In this document: positions 5,562 to 17,591 of the stretch, in pieces | Layout of the letters: each line of letters opens with the position of its first letter | Position numbering within the stretch: the first letter of the stretch is position 1 | Assembly: GCA_907165135.1 (NCBI GenBank) | Contig: OU015566.1 | Span: 6,262,001 to 6,326,000 of the forward strand | DNA from: Oikopleura dioica | Taxonomy: Eukaryota; Animalia; Chordata | Direction of reading: 5' to 3' | Length of the DNA stretch: 64,000 nucleotides | Notes under the pieces: generated by a model | Told to the model about the DNA's origin: nothing | The model's database searches: none | What the model saw: the letters and a program-made list of their open reading frames with translations, nothing else | Translations under genes and position numbers: made by a program

Positions 5562-5837
5562 GGGGACTCGCAGTACCAAAGTTTTTTGGTACTGCCAGTA
5601 CCAATTTTGGTTTTGGGAATACCAATTTCGGCTTTTTGAGTGATATTTTAACGTAATATTTCAGTCGGAACAATAGTAGCCGGGTAAAAAGATGTGTATC
5701 CTGTCTGAATTAGTTAGTTTGTTACCACAGAACCCGCGGACCGGGTGTTCCTGGCTGACTAAAATTTTGCCTTGCCAAAATTGGTACTGGGAGTATCAAA
5801 TTGGTACTGGCAGTACCAATTGGTACTGGGAGTCCCC
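5562..5837. mobile_element. Inverted-repeat (MITE-like) element with internal CAGTACCAA/TTGGTACTG repeats
   Basis: Ends GGGGACTCGCAGTACCA and TGGTACTGGGAGTCCCC are inverted copies; several subterminal repeats; no clear TSD. Confidence 0.7.
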
Positions 5838-5954
5838 CCTTAGTCGGCTGTCTTCAACTTTCTTACTTCTGACTGCAGGATTCATAAGCCAGTTTTCCAA
5901 TATTTAAAATTTTCTATTCTTTTGCGAGGTTCAGGATTCTGCACCAATTACTTC

Positions 5955-6071
5955 GGGGGTACTGAATGTGCCGCCCTGCGCCGTCCGGTCCTAAACCTAC
6001 CCAAATATTTTCGGCTCCGGCGAGACCGGGTGACGCTGGGCGGCGAAGGGCGGCACAATTCAGTGTCTCCG
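5955..6071. mobile_element. Short internally deleted member of the GG-ended, 8-bp-TSD MITE family (also at 7883 and 16862)
   Basis: TIR GGGGGTACTGAATGTGCCGCCCTGCGCCG versus CGGCGAAGGGCGGCACAATTCAGTGTCTCC; flanks ATTACTTC / ATTTCTTC match 7/8. Confidence 0.75.
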
Positions 6072-7545: not shown

Positions 7546-8748
7546 ATGAAAGATCCTACCCCGGTTGCCAAACCAGTGGAGCCAGTAGTTCAAATGTAAG
7601 ATTAAAGTAATTAAATATAATATTATAAGATTGTATTGATAAGAGACCCCTATAAAGAAGCTCAAACTGCTGCACGCGAAGAATGTTTAGCAGCGCACAA
7701 TGAATATCGTGGAAAACACATTACCGTTGGTGGAAGCAACATGGTATGAGCGATTTCAATGATAAGCTTTATTTTTTTAATTTTCAAGTATTTGTTTGGC
7801 CCGCAAACCAACAAAGCACAAAAGGTGGCCGACAAACTTGCCTCTGGTCGTAGCTTATTGAAAAGGTGAGAAAGCATTTTTTGGGGGGTACTGAATAGCG
7901 CCGCCTTGCGCCGCCTTGCGCCGCCTAGCGCCGCCTTGCGCCGCCCTGCGCCGCCCGGTTCGGTACAAAGCGGGTCTCGTCTGACCAAATCCTGACCAAA
8001 CTAAATGATCAGAACAAGAGCGAAAGTTGGGCCCCGCCAACCCGATGAGTTCTCTACCAGAAAATGCGCGCGTAAGGGCCTTTGGCCCGTCGCGTGCTTA
8101 ATAAATTGATGATTTGATGCGAAAATCTGGAAATAATTTAGACTCTCAATAATTACACCCTAAATTATTAGTTTTCTTTTTTCTGGTGGTCAGATTATTC
8201 AAATATACGAGAATAAACGTTTTGATAAGAAAACAGAAAAAAATCATCATGGAAACGCCGAAAATCTTCGATAAGAAAAAATTTAAGCAGGACTGGGCGG
8301 CGCAAGGCGGCGCTATTAAGTGACTCCCCATTTTTTCGTTATCTAATAGGATTTTTAAGGGAGCGGACTGGACATAGCATTTACGAAGCTTCAGTAGATG
8401 GTTCCGAGTCGGTTTCGACCAAAGAAATTTTGCAAGAAATTGCGAAAAATGCCGTGACAGATTGGTATAGCCAGATCGACAACTACGATTTTGAGACGAA
8501 TGGAAAGAAGGATGAAAATGGAGGAGAAGTTGACTATTTTACCAGACTTGTCTGGAAAAGCAACAAATGGATCGGCGTTGGGGTAGCGATGACGGAAGAT
8601 CGAAAATCTGCATACAGTGAGTAATCGTTTTTTAAGCAATGTCGGGATTACGAATTGAATTTTTAATTGTATTTTAGTTGTTTGCAATTACCGGGCGCAG
8701 AAGGGCCTTCCAACAGAGGAGCATGAGAACGTTCTTCCCGTCCAATAA
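7546..8748 (+). CDS. CAP/SCP/PR-1 domain protein, tandem paralog
   Basis: Exons: MKDPTPVAKP; CLAAHNEYRGKH; AQKVADKLA; SIY...AVTDWYSQIDNYDF...YFTRLVWKS...GVGVA; VVCNYR; TAA at 8746-8748. Confidence 0.85.
7883..8328. mobile_element. GG-ended MITE (Merlin- or hAT-type 8-bp TSD) carrying a conserved 88-nt structured core, in a CAP-gene intron
   Basis: TIRs with (GCGCCGCCTT)n subterminal repeats; perfect 8-bp TSD CATTTTTT (7875-7882, 8329-8336). Confidence 0.85.
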
Positions 8749-16846: not shown

Positions 16847-16861
16847 TTAAGCTAATTTAAG

Positions 16862-17274
16862 GGGGCACTGAATTGTGCCGCCCTGCGCCGCCCTGGGCCG
16901 CCCAGCGTCGCCCGGTCCGGAACTAATCGACTCTCATTCGACCAAACTATGACCTAGGAAAGAAATCTGAACAAGAGCGAGAGTTGGGCCCCGCCAACCC
17001 AATGAGTTCTCTACCAGAGAATGCACGCGTAAGGGCCTTTGGCCCGTCGCGTGCTCAATATTTTAGTGATTTTATGCAAGATCTGAATTTGATTGAGATC
17101 AACGCTACTGGCACCCTAAATTATTGGTTTTACTTATTTTAACTGTTTGACAATATAAATAAGTGAGAATAACTAAGTTGACATAAAAAGCTTAAATTAT
17201 GGCCTTTGAAAGACCAAATATCTTCAAACCCGGTGAGGCTGGGCGGCGCAGGGCGGCACAATTCAGTGTCTCCC
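16862..17274. mobile_element. GG-ended MITE (same family as 7883) carrying the 88-nt structured core
   Basis: TIR CACTGAATTGTGCCGCCCTGCGCCGCCC; perfect 8-bp TSD AATTTAAG (16854-16861, 17275-17282). Confidence 0.85.
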
Positions 17275-17591
17275 AATTTAAGCCTAGAAAGCACTTAACT
17301 TAGCAATTGCAAATTGTTTCAGGTTGAAATTTAGGTTTTGCCGATTCCGAATAAAAAATCCCAAAAACGCTCTAGAGTTGGAATTTTTGCAGATGACAAA
17401 ATTTGCACATTGAACAGTGATAAGTTATCACTGATAACCAATTATAAGGCCGACCAATTTATACCACTTATTTTGAAAAATTCCCAAAATTTGTCATCCT
17501 CAAAAAATCCATTGTAAGACCATTTTTGATAATTTTATTTCATTTATTATCATTAATTTTCTATTTACAATTTAAAGCCGATTCATAAGGC

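Follow-up and report, generated by a model that had tools for sequence, protein, structure and literature searches.

A conserved block in two diverged MITEs

Why should one short internal block stay almost unchanged between two small transposons whose remaining sequence has drifted apart? The question arises from a 64,000-nucleotide window of the Oikopleura dioica genome (C4:6262001-6326000), where an initial annotation reported 83/88 identity between positions 8013-8100 and 16970-17057, and where we likewise find 5 of 88 positions to differ at exactly these coordinates. Both blocks lie within MITEs of one family, which we refer to as F1. Copy A (7883..8328, + strand, 446 bp, subfamily A) has the TIR tips GGGGGGTACTGAAT and ..AAGTGACTCCC and is flanked by an 8 bp TSD, CATTTTTT, read directly at 7875..7882 on the left and 8329-8336 on the right; eight near-identical relatives occur elsewhere in the genome. 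Copy B (16862..17274, + strand, 413 bp, subfamily B1; also locus L022) is flanked by the perfect 8 bp TSD AATTTAAG at 16854-16861 and 17275-17282, and both copies carry the subterminal repeat GCCGCCYTGC in arrays. Copy C (5955..6071, + strand) is an F1 derivative with an internal deletion, and the annotation was right that it lacks the core, as only the two ends are retained, with no module between them.

Aligned against each other, A and B share an identity of 0.94 in the core, falling to 0.67 in the left interior and to 0.65 and 0.54 in the right interior, with 0.78 and 0.68 in the TIR regions. The flanks are therefore as loosely alike as had been claimed by eye (interiors 54–68%, TIR regions 68–78%).

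In the region 7642-8560, a gene with a CAP/SCP domain on the + strand has copy A inside one of its GT..AG introns (7867-8350). The host exons were read, and the module is in sense orientation relative to the gene; subtracting the MITE and one TSD copy would leave an intron of only ~30 nt. The AT-rich right interior of the same copy (8171-8257, - strand) yields weak C/D-box snoRNA-like matches (ATGATGA .. CTGA) with E-values of 0.5–9, far under gathering scores, which are probably due to chance. Some 115 nt upstream of copy C, three tandem ~20-nt units (CAAATTGGTACTGGGAGT..) with a C-run at the end occupy 5776-5839, and could be the terminus of a further small element.

Genomic distribution of the module

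We searched one assembly of 64,281,565 bp in 19 contigs, five of them large (17.09, 16.16, 14.53, 12.96 and 2.92 Mb). BLAST with the 88-base block returned 94 candidates, and the 40 of these 94 that were scored were 89–100% identical to it. Among 30 sampled F1 loci, ~10 copies belonged to the A-type subfamily and ~20 to the B-type. The substitution pattern separates the two subfamilies and is not a matter of chance. Inside each subfamily, core and flanks are similarly alike. Between A-type and B-type elements the core is 93–95% identical and the interiors 52–68%, so that the separate comparison of core and flanks which the annotation had proposed finds the core far less diverged between F1 subfamilies.

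A whole-element HMM matched some loci in the block alone, and all-against-all comparison and alignment identified these as other short TIR elements with unrelated flanks. We therefore refer to the block as a module, and represent it by a covariance model (R1) that places it at 8016..8105 in copy A (+ strand, 114.9 bits; 8013-8100 in the annotation) and at 16973..17062 in copy B (+ strand, 117.6 bits; 16970-17057 in the annotation). R1 found at least 143 matches at E ≤ 1 in the 64.3-Mb genome, a lower bound for which 150 candidates were scored. Clustering 120 loci on the sequence adjoining the module gave 10 multi-copy clusters and 8 singletons, and the module is thus carried by at least ten flank-defined MITE families, which differ in their terminal and subterminal repeats. 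For example, F1, X, Y, Z and F8 have tips of the ..CACTGA(N3-4)TG.. type but differ in their repeat units, F6, F7, F9 and F11 carry palindromic CAGAATAGTTCTG repeats, and F10 combines ..TAGGGCGGCTTCG tips with GAACGGCGTTCG repeats. The elements measure 413–551 bp, occur in families of 3 to ~50 copies and contain no long ORF. Short F1 derivatives that have no module differ in their junctions, and each was found once.

Matches are unevenly spread, with 34 of the at least 143 on the 2.9-Mb contig C3 (11.6 per Mb, vs. 1.2–3.3 per Mb elsewhere). The size of C3 is that of the Y-specific, repeat-rich region in the published assembly, and the published description of the O. dioica OKI2018_I69 assembly gives 44% of repeats as unclassified (PMC8008620). 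A metagenome scan with a degenerate 24-mer of the motif described below came back blank, and a literature search on strings from the module retrieved unrelated primers only.

The annotation had read the core as the 3′ signal of a rolling-circle element of Helitron/Helentron type, carried as a hitch-hiker by a cut-and-paste MITE, an idea that draws on the - strand of F1, and of F1 only, where a hairpin is followed by CTCTTGTT. This tail (the - strand of AACAAGAG) is confined to F1 and falls outside the part common to the families, which have unrelated sequence at that point, and it can hardly represent the 3′ architecture of DINE-1/Helentron elements. The block is internal in every family, with family-specific sequence on both sides, and homology runs on past it for 130–200 nt on one side and 70–300 nt on the other in every family. 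No copies end at the block, and the solo cores with TT-type insertion sites that might have been expected did not appear, there being no multi-copy solo module among the 120 loci. TIRs and 8 bp TSDs were present in every host element checked (24 F1 copies and the F7 copies, the TSDs perfect). With every structural test negative, the dual mobility suggested for these elements falls together with the rolling-circle reading, to which we assign next to no chance.

Several individual loci deserve mention. Four of them (L052, L053, L055 and L057; C4:9708825, C4:12238007, C5:12109866 and C5:15388802) hold identical 3′-truncated F1 copies with broken hairpins and common outside flanks, evidently a dead MITE copy riding inside a larger repeat. 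A GTTTTG ‘subfamily’ was rejected as evidence that broken hairpins can still amplify, since its four copies share flanks and hence form part of a larger repeat. At L118, 200 bp separate two F10 module copies (C3:167946 and 168146), and four module matches at C4:189894-198054 form two pairs ~6.2 kb apart; both arrangements suggest that DNA bearing MITEs has been duplicated locally, in tandem or as segments. L061 (C4:308480-309487) is an F1 element of 1 kb in which the ends are intact and an 8 bp TSD is present, while ~770 nt of unrelated DNA replaces the module and part of the interior, from inside hairpin 1 on. Finally, a 520-aa open frame at L049:457-2016 has no Pfam match, and the hairpin-1 pattern, which matches within it at 2 mismatches, probably does so by chance.

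Architecture of the module

The part common to the families is a near-invariant motif of ~24 nt (AATGAGTTCTCTACCAGAAAATGC) followed by a GC-rich hairpin. In copy A the motif, (G/A)ATGAGTTCTCTACCAGAAAATGC, occupies 8044..8067 (+ strand), comprises the most conserved columns across families and contains hairpin 2; written across families it reads AATGAGTT(C/T)(C/T)CTA(C/T)CAGA(A/T)(A/T)(A/T)TGC, with the GC-rich hairpin next. In that hairpin (hairpin 3, 8066..8097, + strand), a 7-bp outer stem that includes a conserved G.T is followed, after an internal loop, by a 5-bp inner stem (GGGCC/GGCCC), and the loop at its end is variable. Upstream of the motif, hairpin 1 (GTTGG-6 nt-CCAAC, 8026..8041, + strand) persists in F1, X, Y, Z and W.

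The triple hairpin of the annotation finds support for one hairpin out of three: all three hairpins can be drawn in A and B and hairpin 3 covaries, but hairpin 1 is replaced in families F6-F10 and hairpin 2 is mismatched. In family-level alignments fitted to the covariance model, which lean towards structure for that reason, helix 1 is paired in only 77–78% of cells, hairpin 2 has a C.A mismatch with pair 57-83 unpaired in 18/27 sequences, and hairpin 3 is paired in 88–93% of cells. Compensatory changes in hairpin 3 occur in X (C-G to T-A), Z (several pairs), F10/L128 (G-C to A-T) and L080, and one of its pairs is G.U in 16 family-level sequences, A-U in 6, G-C in 2 and U-A in 1, and unpaired in none. 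The proposed covariation check is thereby favourable for hairpin 3, whereas hairpins 1 and 2 gain nothing from it. The two stem substitutions described between A and B are also as claimed, hairpin 3 having G.T vs. A-T on the + strand, and hairpin 2 C.A vs. C-G on the + strand, which leaves a wobble on the - strand only. In the outer stem of hairpin 3, 20 cells are G.U on the + strand vs. 4 A.C cells (wobble on the - strand), although one ancestral pair supplies most of this G.U count. Folding of the + strand compared with shuffles gave z-scores of -3.3 (A) and -4.5 (B), against -0.6 (A) and -3.2 (B) for the - strand. RNAalifold, applied to a MAFFT alignment that is not structure-aware, returned hairpin 1 and part of hairpin 3 only, and single-sequence folds of the family consensuses showed no common fold beyond hairpin 3.

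Such features invite a reading of the module as a gene or element for a small structured RNA, for instance a Pol III unit or an RNA within host transcripts, which MITEs spread and which is maintained because it functions at the RNA level on the + strand. The compensatory changes of hairpin 3, its never-unpaired G.U/A-U/G-C/U-A pair (16/6/2/1), the excess of G.U over A.C cells and the better-than-shuffled folding of the + strand all point that way, as do T-runs 15–65 nt downstream of the module in several families and a weak A/B-box-like motif pair seen by eye in F6, F7 and F10. Yet T-runs are common anyway in DNA as AT-rich as this, most of the G.U count goes back to the single ancestral pair, the families have no fold in common outside hairpin 3, and the copies concentrate on the repeat-rich 2.9-Mb contig. 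Rfam gave nothing over the module, either in a gathering search of the whole window or in E-value searches of 601 nt, of six loci and of 176 nt, the last without a family even at E = 10; its matches elsewhere were weak, snoRNA-like or miRNA-like, and fell on AT-rich DNA and TIR foldbacks. ARAGORN likewise found no tRNA-like gene in 15 loci or the window. In addition, TIRs prove to be as conserved within families as the module (see below), something one would not expect from a host RNA function. The unrecognised small structured RNA proposed in the annotation thus finds no positive support in Rfam or ARAGORN, and we regard an RNA gene as decidedly unlikely. A hammerhead was considered separately and rejected, as CCGAUGAG / CCAAUGAG does not fit the CUGANGA core by eye, and Rfam was also negative for it.

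Conservation within families

The clearest view of constraint comes from F7, where sampling is complete: a spacer probe and the module model recover the same copies, 10 of them full. Counted per 20 nt, differences from the family consensus number 1, 2, 2, 7 and 2 across the left TIR and subterminal repeats, rise to 14 and 9 in the left spacer, drop to 4, 2, 1, 1, 0, 1 and 3 in the block around the module, climb again to 9–18 in the right spacer and end at 3, 2, 1, 0, 2, 5 and 0 in the right subterminal repeats and TIR. In substitutions per site per copy, the ends stand at ~1.2%, the module block at ~0.7% and the spacers at ~5.6%, the spacers being 5–8 times as variable as the module and the TIR/subterminal repeats. 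The module shows a deficit of private substitutions in F7 (p = 0.0004) and in F1B (p = 0.0009), which is present at G/C and at A/T sites. The dip over the module recurs in F1B1 and F1B2, for which ascertainment bias is limited because F1 copies sampled by TIR pattern make up nearly the same set as those sampled by the module, and in F8 and F9, although F8-F10 were sampled via the module itself and are biased towards intact modules. In F1A (8 copies) such a dip over the module is absent. F8 copies have retained an F8-specific module in flanks that are far more diverged. Within families, the module behaves like the transposon ends. The annotation's description of a selectively maintained cis-element accordingly gains ground, resting on at least ten MITE families and on within-family conservation like that of TIRs.

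Conservation of this kind could also be apparent only. Template switching during gap repair may have passed the block between families, or ectopic gene conversion favoured by its hairpins may have homogenised it, so that it looks conserved because it is young or overwritten. Point variants do recur across families (loop TTT/TCT, stem GCG/GCA and AGAAAA/AGAGAA), and rearranged copies are broken at the module or inside it. Quasi-palindromes can acquire changes that look compensatory through template switching. For SINE modules, moreover, mosaic evolution is the accepted picture in the account of PMC11481361. Against such a neutral mosaic, the families have diagnostic module versions (a 2-nt deletion in F7-F10, a differing hairpin-1 region, the ATTTTGC variant of F8) with no foreign patches in them. 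Conversion within families would also homogenise the spacers, which are 5–8 times more variable, and the TIRs vary as little as the module while not being common to families. We consider a mosaic origin of the pattern unlikely.

A further possibility is that the block is a leftover of autonomous parents, comprising a promoter, 5′ UTR and first short transposase exon (ATG..GCGCGC then GTAAGG) under conservation in those parents, which each MITE family inherited through internal deletion. Internal deletion is the normal origin of MITEs, an ATG begins the invariant motif with CCAAT directly upstream, and a good 5′ splice site follows 9 codons on in F1, Y, X and F6. In F7-F10, however, the putative splice site has lost its GT and the reading frame is shifted by the 2-nt indel, while the third codon may be Ser, Phe or Tyr. 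A MITE has no need of coding or promoter sequence, but its families conserve the block all the same, and a partial inspection around hAT and MULE matches found no autonomous copy with the module. A parental exon therefore seems very unlikely. The short ORF itself (MSSLPENAR..) was discarded as a candidate, the 2-nt indel between families shifting its frame.

Transposon class and possible autonomous partners

The elements have the hallmarks of MITEs, namely TIRs, a fixed 8 bp TSD, short length, multiple copies and no coding capacity. TSD length fits hAT, although the tips GGGGGGTACTG.. depart from the YARNG rule in all but F10 (..TAGGG); in MULEs, whose TIRs are long, the TSD usually measures 8–10 bp. 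The elements are not SINEs: ARAGORN and Rfam gave no tRNA-like match, and TIRs and fixed 8 bp TSDs are found where SINEs have TSDs of variable length. A central domain common to otherwise different families is SINE-HCD-like behaviour, which makes for an analogy and not for membership.

Ten places in the genome encode a hAT domain, none of them near module matches, and the four hAT loci examined contained neither the module nor the repeats of the MITE families. Seven near-identical hAT dimerisation-domain matches are found at L131-L134 (G000:C1:635414-643473 and 731134-739185), four of which form two pairs with a spacing of ~4.87 kb (4868 and 4860 bp), the pairs lying ~95.7 kb apart; the 3.2-kb pieces from these loci contained neither module nor MITE-family repeats. 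MULE domains occur in thirteen places, four of them inside open frames of 541–660 aa (G000:C1:5821086, C5:10116858, C2:8822519 and C2:2874461), which may be intact autonomous elements judging by their reading frames. A weak match to the module model lies ~150 nt from another MULE match, at C3:2065052-2065240. IS1595/Merlin domains were not found in the genome, nor was a P-element domain, the latter by a search that was silent in all control genomes too. Open frames in the loci examined encoded host domains only.

Discussion

We suggest that the block may be a cis-acting propagation module, a counterpart in DNA transposons to the highly conserved domains of SINEs, and on sequence comparison we give this reading about an even chance. 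The block would form the centre of a ‘highly conserved domain’, ~85–140 nt long, in the interior of elements from at least ten non-autonomous TIR families. The TIRs and subterminal repeats presumably serve mobility only, and since the TIRs, with mobility as their sole role, are as invariant as the module, the differences between copies appear to have been filtered by selection on element lineages. Such a filter would in turn mean that the domain is needed in cis for continued propagation. Insertions in so compact a genome are probably short-lived, with lineages surviving by moving, and if turnover is of this kind, private differences would have arisen in lineages that were still mobile. The module-less F1 derivatives, each a one-off, and a pile-up on C3 of the sort expected of selfish DNA are consistent with a requirement in cis, and are not proof of it.

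The working parts of such a propagation module would likely be the invariant ~24-nt motif and the adjoining GC-rich hairpin, and its likely role that of an internal transposition enhancer or of an accessory site for a host factor or transposase. The signal may be read on the + strand while the DNA is single-stranded. The subterminal repeats differ between families and the transposases presumably differ with them, so a transposase-specific site is no obvious fit. A second possibility is a signal that lessens the harm done by insertions in a gene-dense genome. More boldly, the module could be the first HCD to be described for DNA-transposon MITEs. It would then be a strand-specific structured signal, made up of the invariant 24-nt motif and the hairpin with its conserved G.U, which a transposition or host factor common to several transposase lineages could read in the form of RNA or single-stranded DNA, or else a Pol III-type small RNA carried by MITEs, a proposal that we hold to be improbable as it stands.

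The interior of a MITE is usually regarded as expendable, and it has long been asked what makes some families amplify. With the module there is now a concrete candidate, open to mutation, for a determinant in cis of how well MITEs succeed.

Among known systems, hAT- and MULE-type MITEs are similar in their 8 bp TSDs, TIRs, arrays of short subterminal repeats, size of 0.1–0.6 kb and want of an ORF, though outside F10 the tips do not follow the YARNG rule of hAT. DINE-1/Helentron-associated elements (HINEs) are likewise short and non-autonomous, with a stem-loop and subterminal inverted repeats, but their stem-loop stands at the 3′ terminus and they have no 8 bp TSD, whereas here the hairpin is internal to elements with TIRs and perfect TSDs. 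Internal cis-acting transposition enhancers are known from the 11-bp internal inverted repeats of the P-element, the internal domain of piggyBac and the internal sequences by which Stowaway MITEs are tuned. These resemble the module in being internal sequences, off the tips, that raise mobility and would be kept by element-level selection; they are however family-specific, while the module is common to families with different ends, and its role is a predicted one. In behaviour, the module is close to the HCDs of SINEs (CORE, V, Deu, Meta), described in PMC11481361 as a central block of tens of nucleotides, of unknown role, in otherwise different families whose modules undergo mosaic evolution. 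In both cases a central block is common to different non-autonomous families, but SINEs are Pol III-transcribed retroposons with LINE tails, whereas the carriers here are DNA transposons with TIRs and TSDs and the conservation is seen within one genome. If the parallel is sound, DNA transposons would have their own equivalent of the conserved SINE domains that await explanation, in the setting of a chordate with a tiny, gene-dense genome.
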